A stretch of 64,000 nucleotides of DNA from Macrostomum lignano (lineage: Eukaryota): NCBI GenBank assembly GCA_002269645.1, contig NIVC01002947.1:1-64000 (forward strand), given 5' to 3'. Under the pieces are notes generated by a model. It did not search any database, was not told the origin of the DNA, and worked only from the letters and a program-made list of their open reading frames with translations. Positions 25,566-55,735 of the stretch are shown here, in pieces. Each line of letters starts with the position of its first letter. The first letter of the stretch is position 1. The position numbers and the translations under genes were made by a program.

Positions 25566-26189
25566 TGACTGCTGGACCACCGTGCAGCACAGGGTGTCCG
25601 GCTCAGTGGACTTTTACCGCAACTGGACTCAGTACCAGAGCGAGTTCGGTGACCGACTCGACGGAAACTACTGGATCGGTGAGCGGTGAATCCAAGATCT
25701 GCCTCATTCGCTTCCTTTTCGGTTGAGTCTGCTACGAGCTGTGCTCGATTTACAGGTCTGAACTCGCTTCACGAGCTCACGAGGTCTAAAAGCCGAAAAG
25801 TGAGGTTTTTGATCACTGATTGGGACCATTTGGAGACCTGGGCTGAGTACTCCAGCTTCTCAGTCGGTCCTGAGTCTCACAAGTATCGGCTGAACGTGTC
25901 CGGCTTCTCAACCGGCAGTGCCAAAGTGGGCGACAGCTTCTCGCACGGCAACGGCATGCAGTTCAGCACCAAGGACGCTGACAACGACATTTCCGGTTAC
26001 AGCTGCGCTCAGGAATATTCTGGAGCCTGGTGGTTCGCCGCCTGCTTTCTCGCCCATCCGAACGGACAGTACAAGAACTTCTCTGAGGCCATCGGAGGTC
26101 CGTACGCTCAGGGCATCATGTGGATTCATTTTTATGATGTTTACTACTCGCTGAAGGAGTTCGAGATGATGGTCTTTTTGACTGACTAA
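25566..26189 (+). CDS. Fibrinogen-related domain protein (ficolin/FReD-like), last two exons: join(25566..25678,25756..26189); 5' part not in window
   Basis: Spliced translation [26 protein letters not shown]...NYWIG|LNSLHELT...FSTKDADND...[23 protein letters not shown] matches FReD motifs. The 77-bp GT-AG intron 25679..25755 keeps frame. Confidence 0.9.
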
Positions 26190-27187: not shown

Positions 27188-28419
27188 ATGGCGGTGCATC
27201 ACGTGAGCCTGCGCCGCCCGGACCCGTCCTACTCGTGGGGCTTCCGTCTGCAGGGCGGCATCGACTACCAGCTGCCGCTGAGTGTCGAGAGCGTCGCTCC
27301 GGGCACCGTGGCCGACCGTTGCGGCCTCGTACGCGGCGACTTCGTCGTTGGCATCAACGGCCAGCCAACGGACTACCTGCAGCACGAGGCCGCCAAGATG
27401 GCCATCATTCGGTCAGGCAACGAGGTGGCCCTCACTGTGCACCGCGGCAGCGGAGGCGGTGGAGGCGGGGGAGGCGGGGGAGGCGGCGTAGCTATCTACG
27501 AAGACTATGAAGGCAGCGGAGGCGGCGGTGGTGGCGGAGGCGGCGGTGGGGTGAACGTCTGGAGGCCGTCTGTGCAGTCGGTGACGCAGCTCTACCAGCA
27601 GCACCAGCAGCAGCGGCAGCAGCAGCAGCAGCAGCACCATGCCCCAGCCGCTAGACCCAGCGGTGTGGGAAGATTTCCCGCCGGCAGCGGCAGCATGTTC
27701 GCCGACCTGCCCAAGGTCAGTGAGAGCTGAATAGAAGTGGCACTTGGGTAGCAGTTAGTGCAACTGCTCATGATAATTATGAGTAGCAACCCCAAGGGCG
27801 GCCTGCCACGTAGTCAAGGTGTGAGCTCGAGCGCTCGCTCAAGGTTCAGCGGGTCGGCGCTGTTGCTTTGATTGATAAACTCGGACGAATTAAAAGTACA
27901 TTTCCTCCACATTAATTCGCGCAGGTGACGAACACGTCATTGGCGGCAAACAAAACGGACACGAACGTCCGTCACTACGACAACAACTACAACAGCAGCC
28001 CGAGGCCGTTCACTCCGCACGGCTACGCCTACGGCCCGGCTGCTGCACAGCGTCATCACCGAGGCGGCGGCGGCGGCGGCACCAGCAACAGCTTCCACCA
28101 GCAGCAGCCGCACAGCCCGCACCTGCAAGACTCCACCAACGTGGCTTCAAGCCACGGCTATCGGCAGGTCCGCCCGCCGGAGCCCGGCGTGCCCCGGCCA
28201 GCGCCCGGCGGCGGCGGCGGCGGCGGTTTGATTTGCGCCGCGTGCGGCGAACTCGTCCGCGGCGTCTTCGTCAACGTCCAGGGCCGGCTGCCGATGCACC
28301 CGGAGTGCTTGAAGTGCGCCGCCTGCGGTGTTGGCCTGCGCCACTGCGGCTATTACTGCGTAGAGAACCGCGTCTTCTGCGAGGCCCACGCCAGGGCGGC
28401 CACTGCCGGCGGTCTGTGA
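27188..28419 (+). CDS. PDZ and LIM domain protein (ALP/PDLIM type), about 340 aa: join(27188..27715,27925..28419)
   Basis: N-terminal PDZ (WGFRLQGGID...GD...ING...HEAA) and one C-terminal LIM domain (CAAC...HPECLKCAAC...CEAH). Gly/Gln-rich linker. Phase-0 intron gtcagt...gcag. Confidence 0.9.
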
Positions 28420-31754: not shown

Positions 31755-38951
<7,197 letters not shown>

Positions 38952-43104: not shown

Positions 43105-43811
43105 GTCTGTCAGTGCCCAGCTCGTACCTGCAGCACCAGCAGGTACAGTGAGTCCCAGAACCGCTGGTGCAGCTCGGGCGCATCAGTGGCGTTGGCAGAC
43201 TCCAGCAGCTCGGCAATCCAGCGGTCGGGCTGCGGGCAGTGCAGCCGGGCCCAGTCTACCAGCTCCAGCAGAATTTGAGGGGCGGCGGCGGCGCTCTGAT
43301 AGCGCGGCGCTACCCAGAGGATCTCCACCAGGTGCCACAGTATCTGGCAGGCAGCCAAAAGTTGCGACTGGTTCTCCAGGAAGGCGGCAGCTTCGGGCTC
43401 ATCGGTAGCAGCAGCAGCGGAGTCCATCAGCTCGGAGGCGCAGTCGTGCATGAGGGCGCGGTACTCCTTGCTGCAGCGGAGCAGAGCCTCGCGAGTCTCA
43501 GCGGAGCTGCCAACGGAGGCGTCGCCAAGTCGCTGGCAGGTGAGGAACACCCGGTGCGACTCGGCAGCCAGCCGGCGAAGGGTGTCGCAGTCGTGAAACT
43601 CGGTGGACCAGCGGCATTCAAGCAGGTGTCCGGAGCTGGCAGCAGCGACAGCTGGCCGAGAGCTGGCCGCGGCGGCCGCCTTGAAGACGGTGACGACCGC
43701 GCCTAGGGAGGACCAGGCGGCTCCCAGCTGACAGCCGGCTTCCACTGTCGGCAGCGGCAGCGCCACCGAGCTCTCCGGCTGCTGAGATGAGGCCGCTTCG
43801 CCTTGGAACAT
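40607..43811 (-). CDS. NUP85: Nuclear pore complex protein Nup85, about 679 aa: complement(join(40607..40820,41294..41712,42164..42886,43128..43811))
   Basis: Motifs [29 protein letters not shown]|[32 protein letters not shown]...[46 protein letters not shown]. All introns are GT-AG and the summed length of 2040 nt is in frame. Confidence 0.9.
40905..41250. repeat. CT-rich minisatellite (CCCCTACTCTCCCTCT...) in NUP85 intron 3
   Basis: Directly visible. Confidence 0.88.
41770..42075. repeat. 23-bp repeat ATGGCTGCTTCCATGCTCTATTT in NUP85 intron 2
   Basis: Directly visible. Confidence 0.93.
42917..43110. repeat. (CTGT)n microsatellite in NUP85 intron 1
   Basis: Directly visible. Confidence 0.97.
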
Positions 43812-45106: not shown

Positions 45107-47245
45107 TCAGTTCAGGAACTGGTACTGGAACTGGTCTCCGAATTTCTCCTGCATTTTCCTTCGCCGTCTCGCCTCCTCGTCCTCGGCCGCCCGCCTCAGC
45201 GCGGCCTTGCTGGCCACCCGGGCTGCCAGGCGGCTCCTCGGCGTGTCCACCAGCGCCCGGATGTCCACCAGGCCGCCGGTGCCGTCCGCCGTTGCGCTGT
45301 CGGCAGTCCACTGCGGCTGCTTCTTCCTCTTGACGGCCGCTTTCTTCTTAGGCGACTGAGACTGCGACTGGCTGCCGGACGGCTCTGCAGCGGAAGCAGA
45401 AGTGGCAGCAGCGGCGGTCAGCTGCCCAGCCTCATCCCTGGGCAGGATGCGGCCATGGAACGGGCACTTCAGGCGGTCCATTCGGGCGCAGACGCCGCCG
45501 CCGGGCAGCGGGTGGCGGCAGGCCCAGCGCACCGGCTCCTCGGGCTTCGAGTACACCATGGTGCGCATCGTCAGGATGTGCCGACTGCCGCTGATCTCGA
45601 AGGCTTCGTCGCCGTCCAGCGGCCGGTAGCCGAACGAGTGGCCGCCGTCGTCCATCCTGTAGCCGATGGTGGCCGAGCTGAGCTCCGCGGCCGCGTCCTT
45701 CGCGCCCCAGTGCAGCAGGTCCAGGCCGAACGGCACCGTGGGAACAGCGCTGCTCTTCGTCGACTCTGTCGCCGAAGCCGACGAAGCTGCTGCCATCGTA
45801 GTTGACGCTGAAGTCGAAGAGGCAGCCGGTCTTGAAGCTGCCGACGACGGCTTGCTGGCGCTGGCCGGAGCCTCCTCGGCCTCCGTCTCGAAGCCTTCCT
45901 TTTTTTCGACAGCCTCGAAGTCGGTCGTGGATTCGTCGTCGTCATCCGTCAGGTTGTCGCCATCGACATCGTCGCTGAGGTGCGGCTGTCGGTCTCCGGC
46001 TGGCTGCCGCAGGATCCTCAGACTGGCCGCCTGTCCGAGCAGCCGGTCGGCTCTGGCCAGCAGGTCGGCCAGCTGGGCTCGCAGCTGCTGGTCGCTGGAG
46101 GAGTCGCTGCCGTCCTGCAGGCCGCCGCAGCGATCGGCCAGGGCCAGCCAGCGGGCCAGCCGTGGCCGGAGCTTCTTGCGCAGCTGGCCGGAGCGAGTCG
46201 CCAGGGCTTCGACCAGCTCGGCGTTGTCCGGCGTCTCTCGGACAGTCGGACGGGCCAAGCGAAGTTGCAGCGTCGATGTAGAGGAGGCGGCGGAGGCGGC
46301 GGCGGCGGTGGCCGAGCAGCTGACGATGCCGTGCAGCCGGCGGCGCTCGTCCTCGGTGGCGCCGTCAAAATCGGCGTCGGTGTCGTCTTCGGCGTCGTCG
46401 ATGCTGTCGGCGTCGCCGGTCACACGGCCGGAGGTGAGCGAGTTCACGTCGAATTCCTCCGGCCGGGGCACCAGCAGCTCCAGGCAGTTGGCAACGGTTG
46501 CTAGGCAGGCGTTGAGCTCGGCCTCCTCGTCTTGAAACTGCCGCCGCGCCTCGTCCAGCAGGTCGCGCTTTTTCTCAGCCAGCCGGCGCGCCTCCGCCTG
46601 GCGCTGCTCGGCCGCCGCGGCGAGGCGGGAGCGAACCTGCGACAGGCGCGACTGGGAGGGGGAGAATCTAATCTCACTCTGAGATATCGAATCTCTTTGT
46701 GGCCTGTGAAACATTTGATCTCGATGTGAGAAAGCCGTGGAAATCCGTAGAAATCGAATCTAATCTCTGTTATTAAACATCAAATTTCTCTCTGTCAAAC
46801 ATCTAATCTCTCTGTTAGACATCAAATCTCCTTATTTGTTAGACATTTAATCTCTCCGTGAGAAGCATTTTAATTCGCAATTTCTGATAAAAAATGCATT
46901 CATGAAGATCGGATTCTCTGATAGAGAAGTCAGCTGACTTGGTGAAAAACCGAACCCCCCACAGTCATGTTCAGAAACAGATTCAATCACTAAGCCCATT
47001 GAAGTCACGAAGGGTCAATTGATGCTCACCGCGTGCGCTTGAGAAAGAAATCTGAAAGCGAACAGCAGCTTGGGCTGCTCAGCGCTGAACTGCTCATGCC
47101 AGTCGATGAAGGCTTCCAGGGCGATGTCGCCCAGCTGACGGAACACTGACACCGGCTTGGGTGGCGGCGAGCTCGCGTCATTGTCTGCGGGGTGGGATAG
47201 GATAGATAGATAGATAAATGAAGACGGACAGACAGACAGACAGGC

Positions 47246-47278
<33 letters not shown>

Positions 47279-47301
47279 GGCAGACACTAAGACAGACAGG
47301 C

Positions 47302-47354
<53 letters not shown>

Positions 47355-47370
47355 TACAGGCAGACAGACC

Positions 47371-47406
<36 letters not shown>

Positions 47407-47833
47407 GGCAGACAGACAGGCAGACAGACAGACAGGCAGACAGACAGACAGGCAGACAGGCAGACAGGCAGACAGACAGACACAGGCAGTTAAAAAACCC
47501 ACCAGTGAGCACGGAGGCCACCAGTCTTTCGAACCTGTCCAGCACCAGTTCCCGGAAGCGGCGCGACCTTCTAAACAGCAGGTCGACAATCTGGAAGGCG
47601 GACAGGCGCACCTGAGCATGGTCCTGGGCCAGGCGGTGGCACAGCAGGCTGTGCGCCAGGTCCACCAGCTGCTGGTCGGAGCGGCAGAGCCGCTTCAGCT
47701 CGGCGCTGTCCGCCGGGTCGAGGCTGGGCCGGCCGCTGCGCGTGAGCCGCTCGATGCAGCCGTGCAGGCGGTCCCGGGGGTCGGCGGCGGTGGCTGCGCC
47801 TGGACGACCGCGGCGACCCCGGGAGGCGTCCAT
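45107..47833 (-). CDS. UVSSA: UV-stimulated scaffold protein A, about 676 aa: complement(join(45107..46651,47030..47184,47503..47833)); exon 3 acceptor could alternatively be 46678
   Basis: VHS-like N-terminus ([14 protein letters not shown]...ELKRLCRS...[24 protein letters not shown]), zinc finger [30 protein letters not shown]-terminal [11 protein letters not shown]. Junctions keep frame. Confidence 0.92.
47222..47485. repeat. (GACA)n microsatellite in UVSSA intron 1
   Basis: Directly visible. Confidence 0.97.
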
Positions 47834-47929
47834 GGCGACGGAATGACTGATGGGAGCGACTGGCGCAGCGCGGGATTGTCGCGCTGGAATGCGGCAAACT
47901 CAAGCTTGGATTTGGGATCTTTGGGTTTG

Positions 47930-48480
47930 CGGACCTTTGATTGTGAGGATTCTGGGCACTGGGCTCTTTGAATGTGAGGATTCTGGGCCCTGGGACCTTT
48001 GATTGTGAGGATTCTGGGCACTGGGATATTTGAATGTGAGGATCTGAGAACTGGGATATTTGAATGTGAGGATCTGAGAACTGGGATCTTTGAATGTGAG
48101 GATCTGAGAACTGGGATCTTTGAATGTGAGGATCTGGGCACTGGGACCTTTGATTGTGAGGATCTGGGCACTGGGACCTTTGATTGTGAGGATCTGAGAA
48201 CTGGGATCTTTGATTGTGAGGATCTGAGAACTGGGATCTTTGAATGTGAGGATCTGAGAACTGGGATCTTTGAATGTGAGGATCTGAGGGATCTGACTGG
48301 GAACTGAGAACTGGGATCTTTGAATGTGAGGATCTGGGCACTGGGACTTTGAATGTGAGGATCTGGGCACTGGGATATTTGAATGTGAGGATCTGGGCAC
48401 TGGGGTCTGGGCACTTGATTGTGAGGATCTGGGCACTGGGATAGTTGAATTTGGGGATCTGGGCACTGGGATCGATCTGG
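47930..48480. repeat. 30-bp minisatellite TGAATGTGAGGATCTGAGAACTGGGATCTT in the MTG2-UVSSA spacer
   Basis: Directly visible. Confidence 0.94.
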
Positions 48481-48628
48481 GCACTCGGCGACGTGAGAAT
48501 CCAAGAAATATAAGACAGAAAACAGCTGACAGGTGGGTATCAAACAGAAATGTTTACTTCCTACCGCACTAGCAATAATCTACAGAAGCGGACGCGCACA
48601 GATCAAAAGTCAAATGCCGCTATGACAA

Positions 48629-49522
48629 TCAAGCAAAAGACTTGTAGCAGAAGAATGAGTGCAAATACTCCAGCAGCCGGTCAATATTGTGGCCAGTCTT
48701 GACCGAGATGGTCAGCACAGGGCCAGGCAGACTGTTTGCTTCTTGAAGCAGCAATTTCAGATTGTCCTCCGAGTAGCTGAGGTCGGCCTTGTTGGCAGCG
48801 ATGAGTTTGACAGACCGGGACATGCCGGCGGAGAAGTGGTCCAGCTCGTCGCACAGGGTCTCCACCTGGCCCAGGGGGTCCTGGGCGCCCAGGTCAATCA
48901 CGCAGATCAGGCAGGGGCAGCGGGCGATGTGGCTGCAGGTTGCGGTGGGGATTGGAAAAGTACTTATGCAGCAGCCAAGGATGCCGGAGAATCACGCGGG
49001 CAACTCGTGGGCATTATAAAAATCCTCGAAAATAGCGAGAAAACCTGCGCAAAATTTATAAACTCGAAACTCCACAAACTCGAATCTCCACAAACTCGAA
49101 TCTCCACAAACTCGAATCTGCACAAACTCGAAACTCCACAACTCGAATCTCCACAAACTCTAATCTCCACAAACTCGAAACTCCACAAACTCGAATCTCC
49201 ACAAACTCGAAAATTCACATCGCTAAAAAGTAACTCCCGCCATTACTAAAAACATCACAATTAGGAAGACGTGACATTTCGAGTTTATAAAAGCGACCTG
49301 GCTTACTTGCTAACCAACTGCAAACTGCAGCCTTACCGCAGAAAGTCGTGGCCCAGGCCCTGGTTGTCGTGCGCCCCCTCGATCAGGCCGGGGATGTCCG
49401 CCACGCTGACGTCCAGACTGGGGAACTTCACCACGCCAACGTGAGGCTGCAGAGTGGTGAAGGGCTGGGGTGACACCCGCGGCCGCGCCCTGCTCAGGGC
49501 CCTGAGCAGGGAGGACTTGCCA

Positions 49523-49554
<32 letters not shown>

Positions 49555-50713
49555 CAGCACGCGGAGCCGTAGCGACAGCGGCCTGCACTCGCCTTTGGCT
49601 CCGTACTCGGCCAGCTGCGGCGCTCGATTGCTGTTGCTAAGGAAGAATGCGTTGCCCTTGCCGCCGGCGCCGCCCCTGGCCGCGATGTACAGCTGGGGTT
49701 TGATGGGGTGGCTGCGATGTACAGCTGGGGTTTGAGGGGGTGGCCGCGATGTACAGCTGGGGTTTGAGGGGGTGGCTGCGATGTACAGCTGGGGTTTGAG
49801 GGGTGGCCGCGATGTACAGCTGGGGTTTGAGGGGGTGGCCGCGATGTACAGCTGGGGTTTGAGGGGGTGGCTGCGATGTACAGCTGGGGTTTGAGGGGGT
49901 GGCTGCGATGTACAGCTGGGGTTTGAGGGGGTGGCCGCGATGTACAGCTGGGGTTTGAGGGGGTGGCTGCGATGTACAGCTGGGGTTTGAGGGGGTGGCC
50001 GCGATGTACAGCTGGGGTTTGAGGGGGTGGCTGCGATGTACAGCTGGGGTTTGAGGGGGTGGCTGCGATGTACAGCTGAGGTTTGAGGGGGTGGCTGCGA
50101 TGTACAGCTGGGGTTTGAGGGGGGTGGCTGCGATGTACAGTTTGGGTTTGAGGGGGGTGGCTGCGATAAAAAAGTGCCCCTCAGCCGCAAACCGCAAACA
50201 ACTTACCTGGCCGTCCTCCTGCAGCTCGCACAGCAACTGGCCAGCCTCATCAAAAACCTGCGTGCCAGGCGGCACGTCCAGCATCCGGTGCTCGCCGTTC
50301 CGGCCGTGGCAGTTGGAGCCGCCGCCGCCGCGACCGGCCTCGGCGCGAACCTCCGGCGGGATGGCGCTGAGGTCGCGTACGGACTCGCTGCAGCGCAGCA
50401 CCACGTGGCCGCCGTGGCCTCCGTCGCCGCCGCCGGGCCCGGCCAGGGGGTTGCAGAACAGCCTGTTGAACGACACCATGCCGTCGCCGCCGCGCCCGCC
50501 CGAACACTGCAGCTGGCGCGAGTCGGCGAATCCTCGAACGTCGGCATCGCCGGCCGCCCGTCGCTTTCGGTGCAGCGGGCGAGGCGGCGACGTCGCCGCG
50601 GACGACGACGAAGCGAGGCGTCGACCAGCAAGCGACGACGACGACGGCAGCGCTCTGCCGAGAGCCAACAGCGACTGCGCCGTTCGGAGAAAAGTTGGCT
50701 GCAATATCAGGCC
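48629..50713 (-). CDS. MTG2: Mitochondrial Obg-family GTPase: complement(join(48629..48932,49337..49692,50207..50713)); no in-frame genomic ATG at the 5' end
   Basis: Obg fold ([17 protein letters not shown]...[45 protein letters not shown]), G1 [12 protein letters not shown]2 PFTT, G3 DIPG, G4 [24 protein letters not shown] fits MTG2/GTPBP5 better than GTPBP10. Basic, acid-free N-terminus resembles a presequence. Confidence 0.85.
49060..49212. repeat. 16-bp repeat AAACTCGAATCTCCAC in MTG2 intron 2
   Basis: Directly visible. Confidence 0.88.
49680..50168. repeat. 32-bp minisatellite (about 15 copies) in MTG2 intron 1; the unit contains the 3' splice site and the first bases of the next exon
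   Basis: Sense-strand unit CTCAAACCCCAG|CTGTACATCGC(A/G)GCCACCCC; real junction CCCCAG|CTGTACATCGCGGCCAGG. Confidence 0.95.
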
Positions 50714-50734
50714 CTGATTAGTACTGATGATTTC

Positions 50735-51400
50735 AAAACAAACCGGAAGCAAACAAAGACAAACCGGAAGTCTAAGAAACACAAACCGGAAGCAAAAACA
50801 CAAACAGGAAGAAAACAAAGACTCAAACCAGAAAAAAACACAAACAGGAAGAAAACAAAGACTCAAACCAGAAAAAACACAAACAGGAAGAAAACGAAGA
50901 CTCAAACCAGAAAAAACACAAACAGGAAGAAAACGAAGACTCAAACCAGAAAAAAACACAAACAGGAAGAAAACAAAGACACAAACCGGAAGCAAAAACA
51001 CTAACAGGAAGAAAACGAAGACTCAAACCAGAAAAAAACACAAACAGGAAGAAAACAAAGACACAAACCGGAAGCAAAAACACAAACAGGAAGAAAACAA
51101 AGACAAAAACCGGAAGCAAAAACACAAACAGGAAGAAAACAAAGACAAAAACCGGAAGCAAAAACACTAACAGGAAGAAAACAAAGACTCAAACCAGAAA
51201 AAAACACAAACAGGAAGAAAACAAAGACTCAAACCAGAAAAAAACACAAACAGGAAGAAAACAAAGACACAAACCGGAAGCAAAAACACAAACAGGAAGA
51301 AAACAAAGACACAAACCGGAAGCAAAAACACAAACAAGAAAGTAACAGACACAAATCTGAAGTCAAAAAGGACACAAACTGGAAGTTAAAACAAAGACTA
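50735..51400. repeat. About 40-bp A-rich minisatellite (T-rich on the gene-sense strand) in the TMEM70-MTG2 spacer
   Basis: AAACACAAACAGGAAGAAAACAAAGAC... reiterated. Confidence 0.92.
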
Positions 51401-51536
51401 AAAAATTATCAATTAAAAGCGACTGAAAGAAAGGAAGACAAAAAATTGACTGAAAATCAGACTTGCATTTGTATTTTATAGCTAAGCAATGGAGCAATGC
51501 TAATATTCTATAGCAATAAAGGAGGCGCAGAAATCG

Positions 51537-52124
51537 CTACTTGCTACTGCGGCCAGTAGTCTGTTGAAAAATTTTGGCCACAGAATCGAAGTCCAAGCTG
51601 GAGGCAGCGTCAACAAACAGTTTTGCACCGTTGCTGGGCACGCTTAAATTAGCAAACGGTATGCCAGTCTCTGTCAAGGCAACTTCGTCTGGCCGGAAAT
51701 CGATAAACCGATTGCGCAACAACACAGTCTTGGTCACGGCTCGGTAGGCGGTGCCATCCGTGTTGGCAAACAGCCAGAACACGTAGGAAGATGTGAACAG
51801 GTGCAGCAGCAGTGGGGTGGCCAGGGAGAACAGGCCCAGACCTCCAATGAGCACAGCATCCACCGCTCCGCCCCTGCCAGCCATGATAACAAAGGCCTGG
51901 CCGCACAGCCCAGCACTGCTTGTGGCCAGCGAGAAAGCTTTCACGCCTCGAACCATCGCATTCTTGGGGCCCCGGTAAACTAAACGATAGTTGGAGCCGG
52001 CAAGCTGCTCTTCTGCTTGGCTTGCCTGGCACAGGGACCTCTGGCTAGATTGACAGCTGGGTGGTAAACTCAAAAAGTTTGAATGGGTAGAAATTCTGAT
52101 GATGGCTCTTGATGCAGACAGCAT
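51537..52124 (-). CDS. TMEM70: Transmembrane protein 70 (mitochondrial ATP synthase assembly factor), single exon, 195 aa
   Basis: RLVYRG...VRGVKAFSLATS, FSLATPLLLHLFTSSYV..L, TAYRAVT..LL, F.PDEV match the family pattern. Presequence-like N-terminus MLSASRAIIRIS. Confidence 0.85.
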   Translation of the reverse strand: MLSASRAIIRISTHSNFLSLPPSCQSSQRSLCQASQAEEQLAGSNYRLVYRGPKNAMVRGVKAFSLATSSAGLCGQAFVIMAGRGGAVDAVLIGGLGLFSLATPLLLHLFTSSYVFWLFANTDGTAYRAVTKTVLLRNRFIDFRPDEVALTETGIPFANLSVPSNGAKLFVDAASSLDFDSVAKIFQQTTGRSSK

Positions 52125-53951
52125 TGCAGAAGCAATGAAGCTGAAAGTAGTCAGAAATAAAACTAAGTCGAATGGACAGTGAAATTTTAGACTTTGTGCA
52201 TATTATGCATCCATGATTTTTATACAATCTATAAGGAATAATGTAAAATGATTGAATGAGGTTCGAAACATCAACTGTGGTGATGATGAAGATTTAATAT
52301 GAAATATTACTGCACAAGAAAACTACTTAACCCTCTCGATTTTAAACTGCCAAATAAGTTTTATTCATTTTTTGGCTAAAATTAATTAGTTGATATTCTC
52401 CCTAAATCTACTTATAAATCATTGTTAACTGTCACTACTCAATTTTTTTTTATTTTGCCTTTAAAATTAACAAAACAACAAAAAAGATCTCTTTTATTGA
52501 ATGCAGAGTTTTATTTTCATAGGATTTCATACAGGAAAGATATAATCATTCTAGTCTGATTATCAAGTCCATGGAGAGAACTCAGCTTTATATCTTAAGT
52601 CAAAAGCAAGCATTTGGTATGGAATAAGCAAGTGCTAGCATAGTAATGGATCCAAATATTTGGATTTGAAATCAAAATGCATAAAATGTCTAACTTTTTT
52701 AGACATTTGAATGTTTTGAATTTAAAAATATTTCCAAATATCTGAAAATGTGCTTCTAAATATGAAAAAATTCAAGAAACCAAAAAAATGTAAAAATTAA
52801 AGAATAAAACTTTTGAAAGAAGACAGTACATTAAAAATTAAAATACTAAGTTTTATATTTTATTGTTCATTTTTACAATTGACAGTTTTTGCAATGGCAT
52901 ATATAGTTATAGTTATCAAAAATGTTATTAAACTTTGGGACCTTTTAAGGCATTAAGCCTGAAGTTGAAAAGTTTTTTAGGTAATCATTTTTAAGTGTAA
53001 TCATAACTTAGCTTTTCAAAATGCAAATGCATAGACTATACAATATATATTTATGCATTGCATTATACATGTATTGTACTTTGAAATTAATTATCTGGAT
53101 TCATCATTCATTTATGTGAGAGAGTTTACAAGAACAATTCTTAGCACAAATATAGCCATGAACATAGTACATAATAGAATACAATATAATATAATACATA
53201 ATACAATAATATATATATAGGCCAAAAGGCCTAAAATATGCAGAGGGGCCTAACATAGGCCTAGTAAACAAAGTTACCATTATTTTAAAGTGCTAGGCCT
53301 AAAATTGAGAGTTGCAATTAATAGTGATCACATTTAGGCCCTAAAGGTTCACTGATTCAATAATTGGCTAATTGATGAAGTGGGTTGAGGGCATTCCATC
53401 TTATATACTAAATCTGAAAATGTTTGTAACTTTGTTTATAAGTTTCGCATCTCCTCTTGAACCACTTGGTAGATTTTCGTCAAATTTGTTTCATTCGATG
53501 TGGAATTCTACTGGGCCCATGTGGTCTAATTTTCATTTTGATGTTGTAGTGTGAAGCCTCTGAAATTGGAGAAATACTGTACTTCGCCTATCTAATTAGT
53601 GTATTTTTCTCGCAGTCAGAGTTAAATTTTCAATTTTATATCTATGGTGGTCCGTGAAGTTGACTACGCGGCCGCAGCATCAGCAGCAGCAGCAGCGGCG
53701 GCTCGAGTCTAAATAAAGTCTTTCAATATATAAAGCTAATTATATAGTGTATTTTTCTCGCATTGATTTTATAACCTTGAAGTTCTTTAAGGTGAGTTCA
53801 ACCGGTGAGTTCAACCGTGAGTCTGTTCAACTTCGATTCATTCATATTCGTGCTGGATTGGAGTGATTTGTCTGATCTTCTGTTTGTTTGTTTGTCGGCC
53901 TGAACCGGTTGACCAGTCTCAACAATTTCATGTGAATGTGTCTCTTAGTTT

Positions 53952-54310
53952 TTGATACCTGGGCGATTAATCATTAAGGAATTGCGAAACAATATCTTAC
54001 AATGTCAAATTGCTGCTGGTCAATTCAAAGGCGAAACAGTTTTGTTGCCGCGCGTACCATTGATACCAAGTAATTTGGATCTACCTGTTAAGTTCAGAAG
54101 GCTACAATTTCCTCTACGACCCTGTTTCTGCATGACTATTCATAAAGCACAAGGCCAATCCCTTGACGTAGTTGGAATTGACCTTGCAGGTAGCTGTTTT
54201 GTGCATGGACAGCTCTACACTGCACTTTCCAGAGCAAAAAATGTTTGTAATGTTTGAGTTCGAATGTGCGGCAAAAGAACCAAAAATATCGTTTACCCAG
54301 AAGTTTTTTG
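53952..54310 (+). pseudogene. C-terminal fragment of Helitron RepHel PIF1-like helicase
   Basis: GETVLLPRVPLIPS...FRRLQFPLRPCFCMTIHKAQGQSLDVVGIDL...FVHGQLYTALSRAK, then a stop and the typical TKNIVYPEVF end. The Rep domain and most of the helicase are absent. Confidence 0.9.
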
Positions 54311-54564: not shown

Positions 54565-55735
54565 ATGGCAAGCAAGCTAAGCAAGTTAACGATTTCTTCT
54601 CTCTCTGTCGGTCCCATGCACGGCGTAGTCTCCGGAATTACTTTGTTAAGAACTGAGGTAAGCTTCCATAATTTGCTATTTTGCTTCATATATATACTTT
54701 TTTTAAAAAATCAATCCACTTAAACAACATCGTTTTTTACTAAACCAGATTAGGGATGGCAAGAAGAACAAATGGTTTTCGTTTTTGATGTCAGATGAGT
54801 CAGGTGAAATCAGAGTGGCAGTTTTTGGCGATGAGTTGCAAGAACACTGGAGCATTTGCGAAAACAGGCAAACAATCTCCATCTGTGAAGGAATGGTAAA
54901 GTGTGCTAATCCAAAATTCAACTGAACAAGCAATATGCATGAAGTTACTCTGTCAATCAATGAGGATAACAAGGACTCTCTCCGCCAGTGTAGCGATGCG
55001 ATAGTTCCCATAAATGGTCCGTTCAAAGCGCTCTCCGAACTACCAAGAATTGGAGTGAATGGGTAAGTCCATCCTCAAAATGTAGAATAAACAGGAAGAT
55101 ATATATACTTCACACATTTTCATTCTTCATATTTTCAGTTTTGTTGATGTTCTCGGTGTCATTGTCAAAGTGGAACAACCCGTTGACGTCAACACGCGTT
55201 CCGGAAAGTTGGTGCAGCTCGCAAAAGTCTGCATCGTAGACAAATCTGGTTTTCAGACTTTTTGCAACTTCTGGGACGCCTCTGCTACCCAGGTACATTT
55301 GTGGAGACCAGGAGACATAGTTGCTATTAGAAAAGCCAAGATTCAAGAGTACGCCGGCTCGCTTTGTCTTGGTTGCTCATCATCAACTATTTCGTATTCG
55401 CCTGTTCATGACACTGCTCAAGATCTGAAAACCTGGTACGAAGAGTCTGAGAGCAGCACCCAATTTCTACCGCTAGCTAATAGCTCAACTATGGACATTA
55501 CTGACACCGCAGCTGACGACGTGCTTGCATTTGAATTCCTAGCATCGATGCAGCCGCATATCGACCGGATGCGTCGAGTTGTTATCCGCTGTGGAGCGCA
55601 ACGGGTACTTATATATACATATGTATATTAACGGGTATGATTTGACTTTTTAATAGATTGTACTTGAAGAACACATTAATACACTTTCCATTTTAGTACG
55701 TCGGCCTGTTGAACATTTGTAACGAATTCCTATGA
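54565..55735 (+). pseudogene. RPA70-like ssDNA-binding gene (OB-folds A and B), 4 exons: join(54565..54657,54749..55062,55139..55604,55697..55735), one in-frame TGA at 54923-54925
   Basis: GVVSGITLLRTE|IRDGKKNKWFSFLMSDESGEIRVAVF aligns ungapped to RPA70 DBD-A as recalled. KCANPKFN and FVDVLGVIV...IVDKSG...NFW...VAIRKAKIQEYAG...SSSTISYSP...AQDLKTWYE fit DBD-B. GT-AG introns keep frame. Confidence 0.82.

Follow-up and report, generated by a model that had tools for sequence, protein, structure and literature searches.

How is a protein made from a gene that has no initiation codon in front of its conserved domain? The question is raised by MTG2 of the flatworm Macrostomum lignano, encoded on the minus strand of contig NIVC01002947.1 (assembly GCA_002269645.1, Mlig_3_7), of which positions 1 to 64,000 were analysed (64,000 nt, hereafter the window; its numbering is identical to that of the GenBank record and is used throughout). 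MTG2 corresponds to human MTG2/GTPBP5, an Obg-family GTPase of mitoribosome large-subunit assembly. Its three exons (50698..48629; 492, 356 and 304 nt) add up to 1152 nt, or 383 codons and a stop, exactly the length of the deposited protein PAA54233.1. The reading frame is open from a stop codon at about 51001-51004 down to the exon-1 donor, and the first ATG in that frame lies within the Obg fold. It is likely that the missing codon is supplied by the spliced leader (SL), whose terminal AUG, joined at 50698, would start MTG2.

The weight of the case lies in conserved Obg residues encoded 5′ of the first Met, rather than in open reading frame (ORF) statistics. Domain positions were numbered on a 389-residue conceptual protein with a Met added at 50713. 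In this protein Pfam GTP1_OBG covers residues 65-215 (profile 2-155 of 155, E = 8.5e-45) and MMR_HSR1 covers residues 218-318 (E = 6.3e-22), residue 4 of Thermus Obg aligns to residue 65, and the best match to a solved structure is human MTG2 (PDB 7odt chain t; E = 2.8e-85, residues 30-381). The protein thus has the architecture of the Obg/MTG2 family, a glycine-rich Obg fold and then a TRAFAC G domain, and the G1, G3 and G4 motifs, including NKAD, can be read in the translation. The first genomic Met is residue 80, 15 residues inside GTP1_OBG, which bears out a preliminary description of this DNA, in which MTG2 was said to have no genomic start codon and its first in-frame ATG to lie inside the Obg fold. 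Since conserved Obg residues (F-A-D...GGRGGDG) are encoded before this Met, translation must start further 5′, where the genome offers no in-frame ATG. Human MTG2 has the same Obg fold and G domain, preceded by an N-terminal extension of about 60-70 residues as in M. lignano; the human gene, by contrast, carries an ATG of its own, and the two extensions show no sequence similarity.

Published as CGGTCTCTTACTGCGAAGACTCAATTTATTGCATG, the 35-nt SL of M. lignano has ATG as its last three nucleotides, and in the SL RNA gene a GTAAG donor comes immediately after them (PMC8629364). M. cliftonense and M. hystrix share this terminal ATG, which the authors who described it there call a translation start codon (PMC10468722); all reported flatworm SLs end in AUG. 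The preliminary description had proposed that an SL AUG supplies the MTG2 start and had named a leader not ending in AUG as grounds for giving the idea up; it is supported both by the published leader and by the deposited gene model, which is 5′-partial and starts at a phase-0 acceptor. Joined at 50698, the SL AUG is in frame with MTG2, with no stop codon before the exon-1 donor. A search of the whole window for the SL, allowing up to three mismatches, gave 0 matches, neither an SL RNA gene nor SL-derived sequence being found, and Rfam at gathering thresholds gave 0 matches over the same 64,000 nt. A genomic TATTGCA, with a 7-nt identity to the 3′ end of the SL, was considered as SL-derived sequence and rejected, as it consists mostly of the acceptor motif and has no match further upstream.

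The acceptor was sought by listing every AG, with its phase, from the stop codon of the upstream gene, TMEM70, to the first Met of MTG2. The published M. lignano trans-splice acceptor motif is [T/C]TNCAG (PMC8629364), and TTGCAG, immediately before 50698, is its sole match between the tandem repeat of the upstream spacer and the Obg-coding part (the sequence from 50698 onward reads CCAACTTTT). Deposited as "partial" with 383 aa, the model BOX15_Mlig004019g2 (PAA54233.1) has PTFLRTAQ as its first residues, encoded from the CCA of 50698, directly after TTGCAG, and the model of a second copy of the gene, BOX15_Mlig017907g2, begins 3 nt further in. Since the frame is open for about 300 nt more upstream, a 5′-partial ORF would have extended into it, and the model mRNA therefore starts at 50698. 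In the TBONE annotation, peaks of SL-containing reads, together with poly(A) sites, set the points at which transcriptional units were divided into genes (Wudarski et al. 2017, PMC5730564). As a calibration of such boundaries, the TMEM70 model of this record starts one base after TTTCAG/C (52140; slashes mark splice junctions), and the model of UVSSA, the gene downstream of MTG2, starts two bases after TTCCAG/ (47883) in another M. lignano copy. The start of the deposited coding sequence, together with an annotation cut at SL peaks, makes it probable that MTG2 mRNA is SL trans-spliced at 50698.

The preliminary description had placed the acceptor 15 nt further upstream, at AATCAG/GGC (exon start 50713, sequence onward GGCCTGATA). 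An AG in phase 0 is indeed present there, the older UniProt model A0A1I8IKX2 opens with GLILQ right after it, and several SL sites are found in about 1% of Macrostomum genes (PMC10468722). As the site in use it fares less well: it is off the [T/C]TNCAG motif, A0A1I8IKX2 is a chimeric prediction rather than a transcript end, and the starts of two deposited transcript-based models fall on 50698 or just downstream of it, though the frame would have let them reach further upstream. By the usual spacing between branch site and 3′ splice site, a TACTAAT heptamer in this region, which the preliminary description had taken as part of its acceptor, resembles a branch site serving 50698. Measured from the presumed branch A (50718), the G of that acceptor lies 19 nt downstream and the AG at 50714-50715 only 4 nt, a spacing that would be too short for a 3′ splice site. 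The acceptor used for MTG2 is most likely TTGCAG/CCA; joining of the SL at 50713, whether as main or as minor site, is unlikely, and 50713 is at best a minor alternative. With this shift of the acceptor, the N-terminus MGLILQPTF... given earlier is replaced by MPTFLRTAQ....

An acceptor falls in phase 0 by chance one time in three. Three successive AGs, with exon starts at 50713, 50698 and 50674 (the last followed by TCGCTGTTG), are all in phase 0, and any choice among them keeps the SL AUG in frame. A polycistronic TMEM70-MTG2 precursor that holds no start codon for MTG2 would make trans-splicing an obligatory translational licence. A joint reading of these features, in which there is selection for frame-robust trans-splicing, N-terminal isoforms have presequences of varied length, and an obligatory licence couples two mitochondrial-biogenesis factors, is speculative and in our judgement rather unlikely to hold as a whole.

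Table 1. Features of the MTG2 locus and its upstream spacer in NIVC01002947.1 (slashes, splice junctions)
Feature	Position	Strand	Remarks
TMEM70	51537..52140	-	Pfam PF06979; own ATG at 52124; transcript start 52140 after TTTCAG
Sole intercistronic ATG	51466..51468	-	ATGCAAGTCTGA = ATGCAA/GTCTGA, reads MQV-stop; 69 nt past TMEM70 stop
T-rich 42/82-bp tandem repeat	50738..51398	-	661 nt, 61% T, 2.7% A; most of the TMEM70-MTG2 spacer (outron)
TACTAAT, branch-point-like heptamer	50717..50723	-	presumed branch A 50718
AG proposed earlier, AATCAG/GGC	50714..50715	-	TACTAATCAG/GGC; exon start 50713, phase 0, off-motif
TTGCAG, probable SL trans-splice acceptor	50699..50704	-	first exon base 50698 (CCA, phase 0)
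MTG2 exon 1	50207..50698	-	donor CAG/GTAAGT, last exon base 50207
N-terminal extension, no in-frame genomic ATG	50480..50698	-	73 codons: presequence-like part and first 15 Obg-domain residues
Out-of-frame ATG in exon 1	50545..50547	-	first genomic AUG for ribosome scanning from 50698
First in-frame genomic ATG	50477..50479	-	M of GDGMVSF; residue 75 of the SL-initiated protein
MTG2 exon 2	49337..49692	-	acceptor CCCCAG/CTG, donor CG/GTAAGG
MTG2 exon 3	48629..48932	-	stop codon included

Comparison with another species points the same way. The closest relative outside M. lignano (P0001, 80% identity) is encoded on a spliced, RNA-derived Logan contig (L001, from SRR28338163), which confirms the exon 1-exon 2 junction of MTG2. 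In this transcript a phase-0 TTCCAG/CCG stands 75 codons ahead of the same internal Met, with no ATG between the two in any frame; the position of the internal Met (50477-50479) is also M. The ratio of nonsynonymous to synonymous substitution rates (dN/dS) of the N-terminal extension against this relative is about 0.29, a value of little weight given a poor alignment and a saturated dS. The out-of-frame ATG at 50545-50547 of M. lignano is not present in the related transcript. It opens MPTFEDSP..., and the match of its first four residues to those of the SL-initiated MPTFLRTA... is probably coincidence.

That the ATG is missing through an assembly error, or that the locus is a decaying duplicate, is scarcely probable. 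The assembly is based on long reads of a partly duplicated genome (PMC8629364), and the two other assembled M. lignano copies, about 98% identical to the window, carry frameshifting indels in short G/CG runs. In the first (L002, 1084-1576), for which no MTG2 model is deposited, exon 1 lacks 1 nt and has 2 nt inserted; in the second (L004, 11656-11867), the loss of 1 nt from exon 3 gives the frameshifted PAA55199.1. These indels may be assembly errors or marks of decaying duplicates. The window copy, the only one of the three with MTG2 intact, is uninterrupted over 383 codons, has canonical splice sites and aligns end to end with human MTG2. Moreover, the stretch from the repeat to 50501 does not differ among the three copies and holds no ATG in any of them, and the independent transcript of the other species likewise lacks an upstream ATG.

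Between the TMEM70 stop (51537) and the probable acceptor lie 838 nt, which are 57% T on the minus strand, as the preliminary description had noted in calling the upstream sequence U-rich, and which hold only one ATG, at 51468. Since the repeat that makes up most of this spacer is nearly A-free, its lack of ATG is unremarkable. The single ATG had been put forward as an alternative start, on a cis-spliced 6-nt exon (ATGCAA, 51468-51463) joined to a phase-0 acceptor. The ATG and a GT are present as described and the phases would fit, and the donor, GTCTGA, is as weak as it was said to be, departing from the species motif GT[G/A]AG (PMC8629364). As a source of the start such a micro-exon is highly improbable: it would have to use the only ATG of the spacer, it falls in the likely 3′ untranslated region of TMEM70, and it is seen neither in any deposited model nor in the related-species transcript.

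The gene order is consistent with SL trans-splicing of MTG2 from a longer precursor. TMEM70, MTG2, UVSSA and Nup85 are arranged head to tail on the minus strand, and MTG2 and UVSSA are annotated as g2 and g3 of transcriptional unit Mlig004019, of which TMEM70 is assumed to be g1. The deposited TMEM70 product is a 200-aa 5′-partial form, and exact look-up of its 195-aa ORF gave no match; the UVSSA ORF (45107-46714) is 100% identical to BOX15_Mlig020497g2 of M. lignano. Operons of this species are recognised by a repeat-adjusted distance of <1 kb, and spacers laden with repeats have been described (Ustyantsev & Berezikov 2021, PMC8629364). Less the 661 nt of repeat, the spacer between TMEM70 and MTG2 comes to about 177 nt, a distance that falls within this criterion for SL-resolved operons. 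MTG2 shares with those operons the common strand, the repeat-inflated spacer, the [T/C]TNCAG acceptor and the g-numbering, and differs from them in nothing of kind. A0A1I8IKX2 (P0048; 1065 aa, named 'OBG-type G domain-containing protein') is chimeric, MTG2 being fused to UVSSA (50713..45107, minus strand), has no initiator Met and joins ...HSFFCY to the UVSSA 5′ region; a fusion model of this kind is what a polycistronic precursor would provoke. Through this chimera the genuine MTG2 entries also ended up in a cluster represented by UVSSA.

We propose that MTG2 is the second gene of a same-strand unit, TMEM70 - MTG2 - UVSSA, whose precursor would be resolved by SL trans-splicing. The 35-nt leader (...UUAUUGCAUG) would be joined at TTGCAG/ (50699) to give a mature mRNA reading ...UUGCAUG/CCAACU..., that is, SL-AUG/CCA ACU UUU. 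No other in-frame AUG would precede the Obg fold, and the terminal AUG of the leader would initiate a protein of 384 aa, of which the first ~50-60 residues may act as a mitochondrial presequence and the remainder would form the complete Obg fold and G domain. No full-length MTG2 would be expected from an mRNA lacking the leader, since the genome offers the out-of-frame AUG at 50547 and then the AUG at 50479, inside the Obg fold. Both the use of the SL AUG by ribosomes and the mitochondrial targeting by the extension are inferred.

The composition of the N-terminus fits a matrix presequence, as expected for MTG2. The SL-initiated protein is acid-free for 51 residues, the first acidic residue being number 52 (P about 0.003 given the composition of the rest), its first 40 residues include 4 Arg, 13 Ser/Thr and 14 Ala/Leu, and RRL/A at residues 27-30 (slash, putative cleavage) resembles an R-3 site of the mitochondrial processing peptidase (MPP). 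The presequence suggested in the preliminary description holds up in this acid-free composition and not in an amphipathic-helix signal, the maximum helical hydrophobic moment being no better than that of shuffled sequences, 19% of which reach it.

Besides the hydrophobic moment, several observations weigh against an SL-AUG start. Neither the openness of the frame nor its lack of ATG was accepted as evidence: the 219-nt N-terminal stretch is 72% GC, open frames come cheaply in such sequence, three of three frames are open, and frame 0 stays open in 33% of shuffles. The 5′ end of MTG2 is known only from the coordinates of the deposited coding sequence, and annotated 5′ boundaries are good, if not infallible: in this record the UVSSA model begins 11 nt past its acceptor, and that of Nup85 does not begin at any AG. 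Exact look-ups of five hypothetical products (the SL Met followed by PTFL..., the SL read-through VSYCEDSIYCM..., M followed by GLILQ..., the internal-Met form, and GLILQ...) found no transcript-derived ORF across an SL junction on record, and the gene identifiers had no match in the supplements of M. lignano papers. The related-species contig lacks an SL, has 11 nt in front of its putative acceptor and ends in an unspliced intron; its ends are probably precursor-derived, so that the 11 nt reflect either a pre-mRNA end or a different acceptor in that species. The context of the SL AUG on MTG2 is weak, with U at -3 and C at +4, and on the neighbouring genes this AUG is out of frame, opening a 32-codon upstream ORF that overlaps the real start of TMEM70 (from 52140) and 63 codons that overlap that of UVSSA (from 47883). 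Ribosomes must therefore often scan past the SL AUG on these two mRNAs, or else, as the alternative, the arrangement implies translational damping of both genes. On MTG2, ribosomes that bypassed the SL AUG would meet the out-of-frame AUG at 50547 and then that at 50479, which has a strong context (GGCAUGG).

These points bear directly on the possibility that MTG2 starts at a genomic codon, either the AUG at 50479, giving a truncated protein that is not imported, or a near-cognate ACG, CUG or UUG at 50683-50666. The Kozak-like context of the former, the evident bypass of the SL AUG on neighbouring genes and the use of non-AUG starts on SL mRNAs in other taxa all speak for it. A start at 50479 would nevertheless lose 15 Obg-domain residues, among them the conserved F-x-D...GG-x-GG-x-G strand, together with all of the putative targeting sequence, and the out-of-frame AUG at 50547 would precede it. 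The Met at 50479 is moreover merely a conserved hydrophobic residue, being M in the related species as well; Obg of Bacillus subtilis also has M at the matching position. Near-cognate codons normally initiate far less well than an in-frame AUG lying upstream of them. We regard a genomic start as distinctly unlikely, and an SL-AUG start as the likely one.

An SL AUG that initiates translation has precedents in parasitic flatworms. Of the trans-spliced mRNAs of Schistosoma mansoni, 28% reportedly have the SL AUG in frame, and over 40 complementary DNAs (cDNAs) are reported to need it (Cheng, Cohen, Ndegwa & Davis 2006, J Biol Chem 281:733, as cited in later papers). The SL ORFs of that species (slORFs in the usage of Cheng et al. 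and of slORFfinder) resemble MTG2 in that the SL ends in AUG, the acceptor is in phase and a conserved N-terminus requires the SL AUG, and differ in that in MTG2, from a free-living macrostomorph, the SL Met heads a long putative organelle-targeting extension and not just a few residues. Several cDNAs of Echinococcus granulosus likewise need the SL AUG, the use of which is conserved across Neodermata (PMC3510090), and tapeworm genome papers also state SL-AUG initiation. The E. granulosus cDNAs are like MTG2 in that the SL AUG is needed for an N-terminus that matches orthologues. The mitochondrial and cytosolic variants of E. granulosus TGR reportedly arise from trans-splicing (Agorio et al. 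2003); in contrast to such a pair of forms, M. lignano MTG2 would be mitochondrial only. In the parts of the Macrostomum literature covered by reading or term searches, no discussion of genes dependent on the SL AUG was found. MTG2 is probably a new example of an established flatworm mechanism and not a new mechanism.

The case has consequences for annotation and for the view taken of the leader. PAA54233.1 is labelled "partial" though its mRNA is probably complete once the SL is added. Trimming of the SL strips such genes of their start codon, and pipelines then miscall them as truncated or start them at an internal Met; for MTG2, an internal start would cost the protein part of its Obg fold and its entire putative targeting signal. 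Beyond the parasitic Neodermata, MTG2 would offer a clear instance of a conserved, probably essential factor of mitochondrial ribosome assembly that could be neither translated nor imported without trans-splicing, and it supports the view that the conserved AUG of flatworm SLs is functional and old. Transgenesis is available in M. lignano, which makes the case testable.

Other features of the gene cluster were noted in passing. Intron 1 of MTG2 contains a 32-bp tandem repeat (49677-50167, minus strand, 15 copies), each unit of which consists of the exon-2 acceptor and the first 15 nt of exon 2 (CAG/CTGTACATCGCRGCC). A series of almost identical decoy acceptors therefore comes before the true one at 49693, and a slip of 32 nt in register would break the frame. 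Further tandem repeats lie in MTG2 intron 2 (16 bp, 9.6 copies, 49060-49219), in the MTG2-UVSSA spacer (30 bp, 18 copies, 47931-48473) and inside UVSSA, where (AGAC)n is repeated 65 times (47222-47482); several of the repeats of the cluster keep long spurious ORFs open. The deposited Nup85 coding sequence (677 aa, minus strand) starts at CAA 43805, two codons past an in-frame genomic ATG at 43811 (ATGTTC/CAA, the slash marking the deposited start), and its 5′ end looks clipped.

Elsewhere in the window, an AT-rich region beyond TMEM70 encodes, on the plus strand, a UvrD-like helicase C-terminal domain and RPA OB-fold fragments (53952-54257 and 55170-55631), which look like remnants of a Helitron-type element. 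Also on the plus strand are an exon for a fibrinogen C-terminal domain (25686-26189), a PDZ-LIM-like protein (27188-28419) and a 3′5′-cyclic nucleotide phosphodiesterase catalytic exon (33549-34484). A 22-bp satellite, AAAAATCATAGAAGCGTCATGT, present in about 1152 copies of 98% identity and with a GC content of 0.32 and a strong A skew, occupies the first 40% of the window (1-25511).

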